Assembly (NCBI RefSeq): GCF_000009045.1
Contig: NC_000964.3
Coordinates: forward strand, 496,001-560,000
DNA: 64,000 nucleotides
Direction: 5' to 3'
From: Bacillus subtilis subsp. subtilis str. 168
Lineage (GTDB): Bacteria > Bacillota > Bacilli > Bacillales > Bacillaceae
The position numbers were made by a program, and so were the translations under genes. Below the pieces are notes generated by a model that ran no database searches, was not told where the DNA came from, and saw only the letters and a list, made by a program, of their open reading frames with translations. This document shows positions 33,336-64,000 of this stretch, piece after piece. Each line of letters begins with the position of its first letter. The stretch's first letter is position 1.

Positions 33336-33421
<86 letters not shown>

Positions 33422-33459: not shown

Positions 33460-33504
33460 GTGTTTATTTTCAAATGATTTACTGCCCACAAACTGCCCAC
33501 TTAC

Positions 33505-34611
33505 CTAAAGTAAGTCATCTAATTTATCAGCCATTTCCTTTTGCTTGTTTGGATATAGGTGTCCATAAACATCAATTGTTGTTTTTACAGAACCATGTCC
33601 TAAACGCTCTTTAATTGTTATGTAATCTTCTCCTTGGTGTATTAATAGTGCAACGTGTGAATGTCTAAAATCATGTAAACGTATAGGAGTAAGATCGCTA
33701 TCCTTGCAAAAGTATTTAATTTTCCGACTGAAAATATCTTTTCTTGAAGGTGTATCTTTATATTGAAAGATATAGGTATCATGTGAATGTCTAATACCTA
33801 ATTCATTAAACAACTCTTCTTGTGCTTCTTTCCAACGTTCTAGTAGCTTAAGCAATTTTTTATTGATGCTAACTCGCCGAATCGAATTTTTAGTTTTTGG
33901 AGTAGTAACAACAAATTGACCATCAAGCCAGGTGCACGATTTATGCACATCTATTTCTAATAAGATTTTGTCAATATCTTTCCATTGCAGGGCGAGCATT
34001 TCACCACATCTTAGTCCAGTTAAAAAAGCAACAGTGTAAAAGGTTTTAAACAATAATTGATCTTGAGGAATTAAACTAATAAATTTTTTGAATTCTTCTG
34101 GTCTCCAAAACTTCATTTTCTTTCTTGTTAAAGGTAATCGTTTAACGTTGTCACACGGATTTCTTTTTAAGATTTCTTCATGTACAGCTGTATCAAAAAT
34201 TTTGCTTAGACTAGTCATTATATTATTAACCGATTTATTGCTTAGACCTGTTTCCATTAAATGTTTTCTGAAATCAGTTATTTCTCTATGTGTGATTTTT
34301 TGTATATCAGATTTCAAAAAGTAATCAGATATATGTTTGTTTATAATGTACTTCTGATTCTGATAATAGTTTGGTTTACTATCTATTTCACAACTTGCTA
34401 AATAAATTGAAATTAGAGTCGGAAAGCTTACTGATCTGGACTTTCTTGCTCTTTCTTCTTGAAATTCTCTTCTTAATTTTGCTTCTAATTCTAAAGCCTC
34501 TTTTCTGGTTGATGCTACTGGTCTCGTCCTAATTCTTTCTCCAGTAATCGGGTCAAATCCAAAGCTAACGTCAACTTGATATTGACCATTTTCAAGTTTT
34601 TTTACAGACAT
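33505..34611 (-). CDS. int: Tyrosine recombinase integrase
   Basis: TGLRCGE, HDFRHS, LGH and VYGH catalytic motifs; corresponds to ydcL. Confidence 0.97.
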   Translation of the reverse strand: MSVKKLENGQYQVDVSFGFDPITGERIRTRPVASTRKEALELEAKLRREFQEERARKSRSVSFPTLISIYLASCEIDSKPNYYQNQKYIINKHISDYFLKSDIQKITHREITDFRKHLMETGLSNKSVNNIMTSLSKIFDTAVHEEILKRNPCDNVKRLPLTRKKMKFWRPEEFKKFISLIPQDQLLFKTFYTVAFLTGLRCGEMLALQWKDIDKILLEIDVHKSCTWLDGQFVVTTPKTKNSIRRVSINKKLLKLLERWKEAQEELFNELGIRHSHDTYIFQYKDTPSRKDIFSRKIKYFCKDSDLTPIRLHDFRHSHVALLIHQGEDYITIKERLGHGSVKTTIDVYGHLYPNKQKEMADKLDDLL

Positions 34612-40686: not shown

Positions 40687-40995
40687 GTGTCTGCTGTAGA
40701 TAAACGATTCAAAAGCTTAGGTTTTAATGTGGGCATTCCCTCTTTAGTTTTTGTGAGAAGTTTAAGCAGAGATTGCATGTTGGTTGTTGAAGGAGAACGA
40801 GTAAAAGGATTTGCTGAGTATCGTTACACATTCTATAAAACAAGATACTTGCCAGACGGTCGAATGACTAGCTTAAAAGTTTATATGGAGAATCAAAGCA
40901 TAAAAAGGGTGTTACATCGTGTAGCATCCTTTTTATCTTTCTTGGAAAGAACGAAACAAATTGAACAGAAGGAGTGTGAAAAAGTTGCTCAATAA
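40687..40995 (+). CDS. yddA: RecA/SOS modulator RamA
   Basis: 102-aa ORF between ydcT and conB. The functional name is from literature recall. Confidence 0.8.
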   Translation: MSAVDKRFKSLGFNVGIPSLVFVRSLSRDCMLVVEGERVKGFAEYRYTFYKTRYLPDGRMTSLKVYMENQSIKRVLHRVASFLSFLERTKQIEQKECEKVAQ

Positions 40996-51305: not shown

Positions 51306-52481
51306 TTGCGGGGTGTTTTCTTAGATAAAGATAAAATTCCGTACGACTTAGTCACGAAAAAGTTAAATGAATGGTATACATCAATAAAAAATGATCAAGT
51401 TGAGCAAGCCGAGATTATAAAAACAGAAGTAGAGAAAGAATTGTTAAACATGGAAGAAAATCAAGATGCCCTGTTATATTATCAACTATTAGAATTTAGA
51501 CATGAGATAATGCTGAGTTATATGAAATCTAAGGAAATAGAAGATCTCAATAATGCTTATGAGACTATAAAAGAAATTGAGAAGCAAGGGCAATTAACTG
51601 GCATGTTGGAATACTATTTTTACTTTTTTAAGGGTATGTACGAGTTTAGGCGTAAAGAATTAATTTCAGCGATAAGTGCTTATCGAATAGCTGAATCAAA
51701 GTTGTCAGAAGTTGAGGATGAAATAGAGAAAGCAGAGTTTTTTTTCAAAGTGTCCTATGTATATTATTATATGAAACAAACATACTTCTCCATGAATTAT
51801 GCAAATCGTGCACTCAAAATATTTAGAGAGTATGAAGAATATGCTGTCCAGACTGTGCGTTGTCAATTTATTGTAGCAGGAAACTTGATCGATTCATTGG
51901 AATATGAAAGAGCCTTGGAACAATTTTTGAAGTCTTTGGAAATTTCCAAGGAAAGTAACATAGAGCATTTAATTGCAATGTCACATATGAATATTGGGAT
52001 TTGTTATGATGAATTGAAAGAATATAAGAAGGCTTCACAACATTTAATTTTAGCGTTAGAAATTTTTGAAAAATCAAAACATAGTTTCTTAACAAAGACT
52101 TTATTCACTCTAACCTATGTAGAAGCAAAACAACAAAATTATAATGTTGCTTTGATATACTTTAGGAAAGGGCGATTTATTGCCGATAAAAGTGATGATA
52201 AGGAATACTCAGCGAAATTCAAAATATTAGAGGGATTATTTTTTTCTGATGGTGAGACTCAATTAATAAAGAATGCATTTTCATATCTGGCTTCGAGAAA
52301 AATGTTTGCTGATGTTGAAAATTTTTCGATTGAAGTCGCTGATTATTTTCATGAACAAGGAAATTTAATGCTCTCTAATGAATATTATCGTATGAGTATT
52401 GAAGCAAGACGAAAAATTAAAAAAGGGGAGATTATTGATGAAAATCAGCCGGATTCTATTGGCAGCAGTGATTTTAAGTAG
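51306..52481 (+). CDS. rapI: Rap family TPR regulator RapI
   Basis: KLNEWY...QDALLYYQLLEFRH Rap N-terminus plus TPR repeats. Confidence 0.95.
   Translation: MRGVFLDKDKIPYDLVTKKLNEWYTSIKNDQVEQAEIIKTEVEKELLNMEENQDALLYYQLLEFRHEIMLSYMKSKEIEDLNNAYETIKEIEKQGQLTGMLEYYFYFFKGMYEFRRKELISAISAYRIAESKLSEVEDEIEKAEFFFKVSYVYYYMKQTYFSMNYANRALKIFREYEEYAVQTVRCQFIVAGNLIDSLEYERALEQFLKSLEISKESNIEHLIAMSHMNIGICYDELKEYKKASQHLILALEIFEKSKHSFLTKTLFTLTYVEAKQQNYNVALIYFRKGRFIADKSDDKEYSAKFKILEGLFFSDGETQLIKNAFSYLASRKMFADVENFSIEVADYFHEQGNLMLSNEYYRMSIEARRKIKKGEIIDENQPDSIGSSDFK
52358..52383 (+). promoter_or_regulatory. Probable sigmaH promoter for phrI inside rapI
   Basis: AGGA-N18-GAAT, the usual arrangement for phr genes. 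Confidence 0.7.
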
Positions 52482-52557
52482 TGTATTTTCAATAACTTAT
52501 TTGCAAAGTGATCATAATACTGAAATTAAAGTTGCTGCAGATCGGGTAGGGGCATAG
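52438..52557 (+). CDS. phrI: PhrI signalling peptide precursor (39 aa)
   Basis: Not in the ORF track: MKISRILLAAVILSSVFSITYLQSDHNTEIKVAADRVGA*; overlaps the rapI 3' end. Confidence 0.93.
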   Translation: MKISRILLAAVILSSVFSITYLQSDHNTEIKVAADRVGA

Positions 52558-53872: not shown

Positions 53873-53932
53873 CTAGGTTGAGGGCCTAGTGGGTGAATAA
53901 CCCGTGGAGGTTCAAGTCCTCTCGGCCGCATC
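53873..53932 (+). repeat. attR 60-bp direct repeat (3' fragment of tRNA-Leu2)
   Basis: Identical to 33362-33421. Confidence 0.96.
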
Positions 53933-53934
53933 TC

Positions 53935-53975
53935 AATAATACCAAGGGTTTAACCACCTTTGGTATTATTTTTTT
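53935..53975. terminator. Diverged copy of the attL terminator
   Basis: AATAATACCAAGGG-loop-CCTTTGGTATTATT followed by a T run. Confidence 0.7.
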
Positions 53976-54029
53976 GTGTGGAAAATACGGCTATGGGAGA
54001 AGACTTGCTCACCAAAACTCACCAGTTAC

Positions 54030-54126
54030 TTAAAGTAAGTCATCCAAACGGTCGGCGGTTCCTTCTGTTTATTAGGAAAAAGATATCCGTTCATTGTAAA
54101 AGAAACGAACCATGTCCTATTCGTTC
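54030..54126 (-). pseudogene. Integrase 3'-end remnant
   Basis: Frameshifted pieces ERIGHGS / GYLFPNKQKE / ADRLDDLL* match the Int C-terminus ERLGHGS / GHLYPNKQKE / ADKLDDLL*. Confidence 0.88.
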
Positions 54127-60762: not shown

Positions 60763-61449
60763 TTGAGAAAGAAAAGAGTTATTACTTGTGTTATGGCTGC
60801 ATCATTGACTTTAGGCTCACTTTTACCTGCAGGTTACGCTTCTGCAAAGGAGGACTCTAAGACAACCCCTTCTTACGAAGAACTAGCTCTACATTACAAA
60901 ATGAAAAGTGAAAAGATTTCATCGAACGGGAAATTAGTTGAAATTGAGTATGTGAGTGGAAATGAAACTCACAAAGTTCAGATGAACGGAAATAATCATA
61001 CTGTAAAAGTCGATGGCATAGAACAAAAAGGTTTAAACTTTGAGTATGATGAAAATGTTGCTAAAAGAACAAATTATGAAAACAATAATTTGAAATCAAA
61101 TGAATTCACAACACAGGCTGCAAAACCTAAAAAGGGATACCATTATGTGGGGACTTTATCTGGGCATACAAAAGCAGCTAAAAATGCGTTATCAGTTACA
61201 ATGTCATTAGTCGGTATTGTCCCTGGCTTGGGATGGGGGAGTAAGGCTGCCACTATTTTATTCTCTTATTGGGCAAAAGAACAAATCCCTGATGCGTATT
61301 ATAAATATGATTTATACGAAAAAGGAGCAATGACTGATAGTTGGTATCAGTATGCTACAGTTCAATTTTTTGAAGATAAAGCTCATAAAAAGAAAATGGG
61401 CAAACCTTGGACAAGTACTCCTGCAAAAGTAGATTTACCTAATAGCTAA
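60763..61449 (+). CDS. yddT: Secreted protein of unknown function
   Basis: Sec signal peptide ending AGYASA; TTG start after AGGAGG. Confidence 0.82.
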   Translation: MRKKRVITCVMAASLTLGSLLPAGYASAKEDSKTTPSYEELALHYKMKSEKISSNGKLVEIEYVSGNETHKVQMNGNNHTVKVDGIEQKGLNFEYDENVAKRTNYENNNLKSNEFTTQAAKPKKGYHYVGTLSGHTKAAKNALSVTMSLVGIVPGLGWGSKAATILFSYWAKEQIPDAYYKYDLYEKGAMTDSWYQYATVQFFEDKAHKKKMGKPWTSTPAKVDLPNS

Positions 61450-61591
61450 TTTTAAAATCACTTTGTCTTTATAAAGGACAAAGTGATTTTTTGTTATACA
61501 GAAGTAAAATCCCTCGTCTGAGGAATCTTGGAAAAAACTTGGTTCAATTTTGATATAACATGTTTTTTTCTTGCTAATTTAGTTTTTCTAT

Positions 61592-61735
61592 GTATCGCTA
61601 CACATTCTAAATAATAAGATATTAGCCGGACGGTTGATGCCAAGCTCAAAAGTTTATATGGAAGTCAAAGCATAAAAAAGGGTGTTACAACGTGTAGTCT
61701 TCTTTTTATTTTGCCAACGTAACAAGTGTGAAAGT
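61592..61735 (+). pseudogene. Remnant of a yddA (ramA)-like gene
   Basis: About 85% identical by manual alignment to 40818-40924; in-frame stop and indels. Confidence 0.85.
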
Positions 61736-61872
61736 AATGATTTGTAGGATCAGTTAAGAAAGGTTTAAGATTAGATATTGAAAAATTTTATATATTTTCA
61801 ATAAAATACTGGTACTATAATAAATGTATACAGATTGTATGGAGATGTAATTAATTAAAAAGGAGTTTTTAA

Positions 61873-62058
61873 TTGCGTTGGAGTAAATGGTTCAATGTTT
61901 TTTGTATAGTAGCATTGGGATCAATATATGGTTATAAATTATTTACTAACCAAGAAGTCAGTACTACTCGTTTAATAATAGCTTCTGTAATTGTGTTGTG
62001 GAATATTGTTGGACTTTTTAGCAAAGAATCAGTAAAACAAGCACAGCAAGCAAATTAA
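61873..62058 (+). CDS. ydzN: Small two-TM membrane protein (61 aa)
   Basis: TTG start after an AAAGGAG RBS. Confidence 0.7.
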   Translation: MRWSKWFNVFCIVALGSIYGYKLFTNQEVSTTRLIIASVIVLWNIVGLFSKESVKQAQQAN

Positions 62059-62158
62059 AAGTCATAAAGTTGGGAAAGAAGGATGTTACTTATGTAGTAT
62101 CCTTCTTTATTATTCCTTGAAAAATGAAACAAATTGGAGATTACAGCTTATATAATCA

Positions 62159-62231
62159 ATTGAAGTCGTTGATTATTTTCATGAACAGGAGATTTAATGC
62201 TTTCTGATGAAATATTATCGTATGAATGTTG
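62159..62231 (+). pseudogene. Remnant of a rapI 3' segment
   Basis: 66 of 74 aligned columns match 52329-52401 (manual alignment). Confidence 0.88.
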
Positions 62232-62407
62232 CAAGAGGAAACGTTACTCAAAGATTACAGGGATGTGATGAACACTCCTCTTTATCGCACTCACCTGACC
62301 CCAAATTGTTGGGGAAGGGCAGGTACGGAAGATAGAGTATTTTTTCTTCGTAACAAATCGAAAAGGTTGGATAATAAAAAACTTATAATCTAAGGCGGTA
62401 TATAGTT

Positions 62408-63001
62408 GTGAAAAAGGCGTTATTTCTTATATTAGACCAGTATGCAGATTGGGAAGGTGTTTACTTAGCATCTGCATTAAATCAAAGAGAAGATTGGTCG
62501 GTTCACACTGTTTCTTTAGACCCTATTGTAAGCTCAATAGGTGGTTTTAAAACATCTGTCGATTACATAATAGGGTTAGAACCTGCAAATTTTAATTTGC
62601 TAGTTATGATTGGCGGGGATTCCTGGAGTAATGACAATAAAAAACTATTACATTTTGTAAAAACTGCATTTCAAAAAAACATTCCAATAGCAGCGATATG
62701 CGGTGCAGTGGATTTTTTGGCGAAGAATGGTTTGCTGAATAATCATAGCCATACAGGTAATTTTGTTTACTTATGGAAAGATTACAAACAATATAAACCG
62801 ATTAGCAGTTTTGTAGAGAAACAAGCAGTAAGAGATAAAAATTTGGTTACTGCTAATGGAACTGCCCCTATTGAATTTACTAATTTAATTTTAGAGATGA
62901 TTGATTTTGATACTCCTGAGAACATAGAGAAAATGATGTATATGAATCGTTATGGTTTTTATCATTTTTGTGATAAATATGGAAATCCATTTGTTGATTA
63001 A
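62408..63001 (+). CDS. ydeA: DJ-1/PfpI family protein
   Basis: YADWEG, MIGG and AAICGA nucleophile-elbow motifs. Confidence 0.88.
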   Translation: MKKALFLILDQYADWEGVYLASALNQREDWSVHTVSLDPIVSSIGGFKTSVDYIIGLEPANFNLLVMIGGDSWSNDNKKLLHFVKTAFQKNIPIAAICGAVDFLAKNGLLNNHSHTGNFVYLWKDYKQYKPISSFVEKQAVRDKNLVTANGTAPIEFTNLILEMIDFDTPENIEKMMYMNRYGFYHFCDKYGNPFVD

Positions 63002-63116
63002 TTTGCTGGAAATGATTTTCCCGAATAGGGGGCTTTGCGATTGAGTTGAATTTCCTAATAAAGCAAAGAAAGATGATTTGAGGTCAAGTTTAACAAATAA
63101 TGCCATCAATATTAAT

Positions 63117-63263
63117 TTGCAGTTATTTCCGATTCCTGATATAATAAAGAAGAATTATTTTTGTTCGGTGTAAAGGATAGTATGAAGATTGACTTTTCGT
63201 CTTGATGATACTTTGGGCAAGGATAGTATATACTGTGTGGTTACACACTAGGAGGCAACAAAA
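63117..63263 (+). promoter_or_regulatory. cspC sigmaA promoter and long cold-shock 5' leader
   Basis: TTGCAG-N17-TATAAT (63117-63145), then an AATTATTTTTG box and about 110 nt of leader. Confidence 0.7.
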
Positions 63264-63464
63264 ATGGAACAAGGTACAGTTAAATGGTTTAATGCAGAAA
63301 AAGGTTTTGGCTTTATCGAACGCGAAAATGGAGACGATGTATTCGTACACTTTTCTGCAATCCAAAGTGACGGATTCAAATCTTTAGACGAAGGTCAAAA
63401 AGTATCGTTTGACGTTGAGCAAGGTGCTCGTGGAGCTCAAGCTGCTAACGTTCAAAAAGCTTAA
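63264..63464 (+). CDS. cspC: Cold-shock protein CspC
   Basis: [15 protein letters not shown]-1 and VFVHF RNP-2 motifs. Confidence 0.97.
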
Positions 63465-63481
63465 TCTTCAATCGTTTATAC

Positions 63482-63513
63482 AAACAGGCTCTTTATATAG
63501 GGCCTGTTTTTTT
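63482..63513 (+). terminator. Terminator after cspC
   Basis: AAACAGGCTCT-loop-AGGGCCTGTTT followed by a T run. Confidence 0.8.
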
Positions 63514-64000
63514 ATGTCTATATCATACTCAATAAAAAACCCTACTCAACGTTCGAGTAGGGAGATGCTACAAGGTAATAGAAAAAGATTTAAAACTTCA
63601 AAGGTTTGTTTACAGTATAACATACTGGATTGACAATATGCGGAATGTATATAAATTATTTAATGTTTTGTTCAAATATAGATAACTGACTCTTTTTTTC
63701 ACTAACCTGTTCGTTCATTTAAGTAAGATTAGATGAATTATAAAAATGGTTTCATCTAAATGTTATCAACTCGCATATCTCTTTTATGAGAAGAAGATAA
63801 ACAATTATTATTCAATGTTGCAGTGGATATAAGAAATTCTTAAAAATAATGAGGAGATCGATTGTTTTTTTCTCCTGGAAATAATCACTTAGAGATACCT
63901 AAAACAATGAAAGCCCTACCTCTCTTCCATCCTTACGGCTCCTTGTCCGTGCCAGTGTGAATCAGGATACTAAAAAAAGTGACTATTTTATTGAGTTTTT

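Follow-up and report, generated by a model that had tools for sequence, protein, structure and literature searches.

The DNA upstream of ydeA in Bacillus subtilis subsp. subtilis str. 168 contains a short rapI-like fragment. With a probability of about 85%, this relic is a non-functional pseudogene scrap that holds the last 30–40 codons of a rapI-type gene from a decayed, older element of the ICEBs1 family. The window, that is, the whole stretch of DNA analysed, is 64,000 nucleotides long (positions 496,001 to 560,000 of NC_000964.3). Positions are counted from its first letter unless genome numbering is stated, and the features are collected in Table 1.

Table 1. Features that bear on the rapI-like relic; window positions unless marked as genome positions.
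Feature	Position	Strand	Evidence or remark
tRNA-Leu(gag)	33336–33419		ICEBs1 lies between this tRNA and attR
rapI	51306–52481		phrI overlaps the end of rapI; rapI-phrI cassette 51306–52557
AGGA-N18-GAAT inside resident rapI, candidate phrI sigma-H promoter	52358–52383	+	Pattern scan
attR of ICEBs1, repeat of the 3' part of tRNA-Leu(gag)	53873–53951	+	96% over 79 columns
Integrase 3' tail scar, directly after attR	54002–54126	+	67% over 134 columns to 33476–33609, E 1.9e-8
yddA 3' end scar with terminator hairpin	61584–61712	+	82% to 40810–40939, E 6e-27
Second yddA terminator hairpin with yddA/yddB spacer	62076–62136	+	79% to 40902–40963, E 2.6e-6
Possible rapI 5' scrap, about codons 52–60, joined directly to codon 341	62134–62158	+	Tentative
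Relic core, frameshifted rapI-like tail	62156–62246	+	RapI residues ~341–372; 84–86% identity to 52326–52419
Degenerate sigma-H-type motif, AGGA-N18-GAAA	62187–62212	+	Direct reading against AGGA-N18-GAAT of rapI
Probable weak continuation of the rap tail	62247–62275	+	tblastx and extended alignment, up to TGATGAA
ydeA, DJ-1/PfpI family	62408–63001	+	Pfam PF01965, E 4.6e-39; downstream of the relic, not part of it
Second Rap C-terminal relic	genome 560943–561105		tblastn; after ydeA, cspC and ydeB, ~1 kb past the window end
Third copy of tRNA-Leu(gag) 3' end with terminator	genome 563495–563571		82% to the attL region

Match to rapI and state of the reading frame

Global alignment of positions 62159–62231 with rapI 52329–52401 gives 66 identical columns out of 74, with one 1-base gap in each sequence, which reproduces exactly the likeness reported in the first-pass annotation. 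The full significant match, given in Table 1 as the relic core, is slightly longer than first stated. In a BLAST comparison of 62110–62300 with the 4,215,606-bp genome, rapI is the best match (E 1e-20, 86% over 86–89 nt), and the next best has an E value of 0.03. A tblastn search with RapI recovers 11 rap genes in the genome. Comparison of the fragment with all rap paralogues had been named as the check on its origin, and a sensitive nucleotide comparison with the 11 genes and their flanks places rapI first. It alone matches at the homologous place (E 3.6e-20), while the other 10 paralogues give no significant match, the best reaching E 0.3. The link to an ICE had been made to depend on no non-ICE rap gene being equally or more similar, and none is among the genome's 11.

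As sources of the fragment, the remaining paralogues are rejected at that E value, and the rap genes of plasmids and phages because none of the plasmid or phage records gave a match. In the genomes compared, from 48 congeners and from 42 species elsewhere in the family (one genome per species), all matches are at 82–89% and fall in rapI-type genes or rapI scars. No intact donor closer than rapI was found in these genomes or at the nine rapI-like loci examined. The fragment is homologous to the RapI C-terminus and, among the paralogues, closest to rapI.

The reading frame is broken in several places. Relative to rapI, the relic has lost one base at about 62187 (caaggaaat to caggagat) and gained one at about 62211, 24 nt after the loss (aatgaatat to gatgaaatat), and the frameshifted stretch contains a TAA stop at 62195–62197. 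There is also a clean 3-base loss at about 62233. Several of the base substitutions are synonymous or conservative. Intact RapI has RapH_N and TPR domains; the relic has no 5' part and contains no intact Rap ORF of ~380 aa. Some 30–40 codons interrupted by two frameshifts and a TAA make the fragment a pseudogene scrap and not a gene.

To the right of the core, the likeness to rapI becomes weak. A tblastx comparison of genome 558156–558275 with 548326–548445 gives 40% over 40 aa (E 3.5e-4), and the weak likeness ends at about 62275 with TGATGAA, whose counterpart in rapI overlaps the start codon of phrI. Comparison of the DNA beyond 62232 with the rapI tail and phrI is not significant, with a score of 10 against 9.75 in shuffles. 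The absence of a phr ORF downstream, claimed in the first-pass annotation, was confirmed. No Phr-precursor ORF with a hydrophobic leader is present in 62230–62407, and the only ORFs after the relic, 62207–62335 (42 aa) and 62226–62393 (55 aa), do not resemble signal peptides. Both phrI DNA and an att remnant were considered for the interval between the relic and ydeA and were rejected, neither being significant. Since the likeness fades by ~62275 and neither phrI similarity nor a leader ORF follows, the relic is a dead tail piece that covers RapI residues ~341–372, perhaps to 380, of 391.

The left edge of the relic offers a second, much shorter candidate for rapI sequence. The segment 62112–62158 aligns best at rapI codons 47–60, with 27 of 39 positions identical in a local alignment against the first 1015 nt, and 16 of 1000 shuffles reach this score. 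The same 11-mer also fits the yddA/yddB spacer, and only the last ~23 nt to the left of the relic are a candidate for a 5' scrap. In the relic of B. inaquosorum KCTC 13429, rapI nt 547482 is followed directly by nt 548334, and these breakpoints fall within a few bases of the two implied for 168 (codon 60 to codon 341), so that the two junctions may represent a shared old deletion. Judged from the alignments, the reading of 62134–62158 as a rapI 5' scrap, and with it the shared junction, is suggestive only, because in B. inaquosorum the copy has diverged far less from rapI (46/46 in the core). As an alternative source of the 20 nt left of the relic, cwlT, which occupies this place in the related genome G048, was rejected. 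It shows little similarity by eye, and the 5' part of rapI fits better, if weakly.

Scars right of attR and in related Bacillus

The relic is not alone. In the 16 kb right of attR, four ICEBs1-derived scars are present, all plus/plus and in ICEBs1 order, and the rapI fragment is the last of them. The site attR is the left border of the decayed element, and the integrase tail that directly follows it has the same orientation as int beside attL. The second copy of the yddA terminator and spacer contains an exact GAAACAAATTG after the hairpin in the alignment. A terminator-like site lies at 62075–62108, and this hairpin copy now terminates ydzN. Only ~20 nt separate the yddA/yddB spacer piece from rapI codon 341. 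The first-pass annotation had taken the fragment to point to a lost Rap/Phr module and a ghost ICE, and this reading gains independent support from the scars of int, yddA and its terminator, which are collinear with the fragment and share its orientation.

The small orphan gene ydzN is flanked by the two copies of the yddA terminator hairpin and therefore looks as if it had been inserted into, or had belonged to, the older element's yddA/yddB spacer. For yddT (BSU05100) and ydzN (BSU05109), the published coordinates 557716–557872 fit the sequence exactly.

No att remnant adjoins the relic; the nearest extra att copy is located 5.3 kb further on, beyond ydeA, cspC and ydeB. The right border of the decayed element has therefore been lost here. 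In all three of the relatives that share ydzN, similarity to 168 stops right after this gene, and the block from yddN to ydeA is non-core in a B. subtilis pan-genome study (PMC8156514). Together with the sporadic occurrence of ydeA, these observations indicate that the DNA right of the relic has been replaced, explaining why phr, yddM and att are missing.

Further debris lies beyond the end of the window. The second Rap relic, which is more diverged than the first, reads ...IEARRKIKKGEIINEDQNIKK followed by a stop, with frameshifts and an internal deletion. It is closer to a rap gene of B. velezensis NRRL B-41580 (69%) than to rapI (64%), and after it come a five-codon ATG stub (MKTRT, then a stop) and a terminator. 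The third att copy scores 46, where shuffled sequences give 7.7 +/- 1.2, and probably marks where an older integrated element ended on the right. Since two rap relics are found between attR and the third att copy, this interval holds either more than one old element or one element with two rap genes. In the related genome G004, the DNA after cspC-ydeB resumes exactly at genome 563572.

All species examined show a mosaic at the hotspot. In G048, whose flanking DNA is ~94% identical to that of 168, there is no intact ICEBs1, and only att, cwlT' and rapI' (97% to rapI) are left. Next come the yddN-yddR block and, set apart from rapI', a phrI' scar that includes the phrI terminator; ~6.7 kb of other sequence then leads to yddM' with an att copy, cspC and ydeB. 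The left edge of rapI' in G048 is identical to that of the 168 fragment but is explained differently, because the cwlT'–rapI' junction in G048 joins cwlT (TCAATTGAAGTCG) and rapI (TCGATTGAAGTCG) by recombination through a 13-nt microhomology, TC[A/G]ATTGAAGTCG. At this locus (G048:C54 ~353000-366000), ICEBs1 is reduced to ~300 nt, and a yrkL-like gene follows that in 168 is found at 2.708 Mb. In G004, att is followed by rapI' from about codon 169 and then by phrI. In both G048 and B. mexicanus, cspC occurs in two nearby copies.

Relics beside att copies are also present in B. inaquosorum, B. velezensis and B. mexicanus. Like the scars of G048, G004, B. inaquosorum KCTC 13429, B. velezensis NRRL B-41580 and B. 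mexicanus FSQ1, the 168 relic is a short 3' piece of rapI. The scars of these relatives, which consist of 3' pieces of rapI, phrI or both, arose via internal deletions and are located beside att copies at the same tRNA-Leu hotspot. They are closer to rapI (90–100% in the shared core), and most retain part of phrI, whereas the 168 relic is more diverged, has no phrI and is not beside an att copy.

The sigma-H-type motif and ydeA

The sigma-H consensus has AGGA at −35 and GAAT at −10, 17–18 nt apart. When the 11 rap genes were scanned at their 3' ends, the literal AGGA-N18-GAAT turned up in rapI only, and by the consensus this motif is a candidate for the sigma-H promoter of phrI. A review (PMC6540685), which cites McQuade 2001, credits phrI with an additional sigma-H promoter of its own. 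The observations made on this segment in the first-pass annotation hold. The relic overlaps the part of rapI that contains the motif (52358–52383), the −35 AGGA survives at 62187–62190, and an inserted A turns the −10 GAAT of rapI (52380–52383) into GAAA at 62209–62212. Directly after AGGA, an A of rapI is replaced by G. The motif in the relic is incomplete, with AGGA and the N18 spacing present and the −10 core GAAT absent.

AGGA-N17-18-GAAA occurs 701 times in the genome, and the degenerate motif therefore carries little information. A deletion has removed the whole −10 from the rapI scars of B. inaquosorum and B. velezensis, so that nothing suggests a preserved promoter. A role of the motif as the ydeA promoter, which the first-pass annotation had raised, appears unlikely, because the −10 core is broken and comparable scars elsewhere do without it. 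A promoter scan found no convincing sigma-A promoter between the ydzN terminator and ydeA, and a weak contribution of the scrap to ydeA expression is conceivable. Just 5' of the ydeA ribosome-binding site, TTGGAT-N11-TATAAT is present at 62367–62389, a spacing that is wrong for sigma-A. No Rfam family was found in 61400–63700 except the cspA thermoregulator upstream of cspC. This element (RF01766, 63183–63512) scores 80.9 bits against a gathering threshold of 78 and extends from upstream of cspC into it.

The history of ydeA itself appears separate. Only one of 48 congeners has an orthologue, at 73% aa, with similarity confined to the CDS, and the gene, which occurs sporadically in the genus, probably came in by a separate acquisition. 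This sole congeneric orthologue (G053:C1:1178696-1182283, 82% nt) is convergent to a full-length rap gene with 38% identity to RapI. In both genomes, 168 and G053, ydeA adjoins rap DNA despite unrelated flanks.

Alternative origins and significance of the relic

The resident rapI is the genome's best match and a near neighbour with the same orientation, and a closer donor has not come to light; the relic could thus be an ectopic copy of it, placed 9.7 kb to the right by illegitimate recombination or as a gene-conversion patch, and since diverged. The setting of the relic makes such an origin improbable. It follows a second ICEBs1-derived piece by ~20 nt and closes a series of four scars in ICEBs1 order and orientation, a pattern that a random ectopic patch is not expected to produce. 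Its divergence of 14–16% is at least as great as the differences between rapI genes of different species, and the in-frame indels of codons in its tail resemble allelic variation and not recent copying. That the likeness is a chance match of AT-rich sequence, for which nothing speaks except the short length, is practically negligible at E 1e-20 in 4.2 Mb, with the next-best genome match at E 0.03.

It is also hardly likely that the relic has been kept as a stationary-phase promoter, sigma-H or other, or as a 5' leader of ydeA. The AGGA −35 core and the 18-nt spacing do survive, 196 nt upstream of the ydeA start, and the interval from the ydzN terminator to ydeA offers no convincing sigma-A promoter. 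Against this role stand the change from GAAT to GAAA at −10 and from A to G after AGGA, the 701 genomic copies of a motif that is little informative, and the scars of B. inaquosorum and B. velezensis, which with their −10 deleted reveal no tendency to keep the promoter. The flanks of the only congeneric orthologue of ydeA are unrelated, and no Rfam family occupies the interval. A bolder reading, in which the relic belongs to a stack of at least three generations of ICEBs1-family elements and is an old rap gene with an internal deletion whose junction B. inaquosorum shares, or in which the motif gives ydeA stationary-phase expression, is doubtful. Such a stack would begin at trnS-leu2, end at the third att copy and span 34 kb (genome ~529.4–563.6 kb). 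If the junction between codons 60 and 341 is shared with B. inaquosorum, the scar predates the species split or has moved between species.

The origin in a decayed ICEBs1-family element accounts for the relic through the following order of events, which we infer from the arrangement of the scars. An ICEBs1-family element would have integrated at the 3' end of trnS-leu2, and the present ICEBs1 would later have entered the same site, pushing the older element rightward. The older element would then have decayed by internal deletions that took out almost the whole of rapI together with the conjugation genes (yddB through yddK). The short distance of ~20 nt from the spacer piece to codon 341 suggests that an ancestor lost ~11.4 kb by deletion, the counterpart of the ICEBs1 segment with yddB to yddK and the greater part of rapI. 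Of int, yddA, the yddA terminator and the rapI tail, this would have left only short pieces in a common orientation, dispersed between the accessory genes yddN to ydzN. Beside the scrap, phr and the right end of the element would have been lost or replaced, and ydeA is now found there. The relic itself probably has no present function, since its frame is dead, its −10 is broken, equivalent scars have lost the −10, and no Rfam family fits.

Comparison with the rapI-phrI cassette of ICEBs1 shows how little remains. The relic is on the same strand as its counterpart in the cassette and covers codons 341–372 with the AGGA-N18-GAAT segment upstream of phrI. Unlike the cassette, it retains ~8% of the gene, is frameshifted, has an internal stop and reads GAAA at −10. 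It also has no RBS, phr ORF or phrI terminator, and neither yddM nor attR follows.

ICEs and their deletion derivatives (CIME-type remnants) accrete in tandem at att sites in tRNA genes, as with ICESt1 and ICESt3 of Streptococcus thermophilus. The region right of ICEBs1 resembles this accretion in its several direct-orientation att copies with decayed remnants between them. It differs in that the 168 remnant has lost the att copy adjoining its rap scar, and unrelated accessory genes split it up.

A literature search found neither the relic nor a decayed ICE to the right of ICEBs1 described in print. The relic is a small, apparently unannotated pseudogene scrap in the best-studied Gram-positive genome. 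It is an ordinary genomic fossil of a well-known kind and reveals no new mechanism, decayed mobile elements at tRNA hotspots being commonplace. Taken with the neighbouring scars, it shows that the accessory block right of ICEBs1, from yddN to ydeA and beyond, is debris of stacked earlier ICEBs1-type elements, and the orphan genes of the block can be interpreted as former ICE cargo. For the design of ICEBs1 deletion or att-site experiments, the extra att-like and rapI-like sequences nearby matter.
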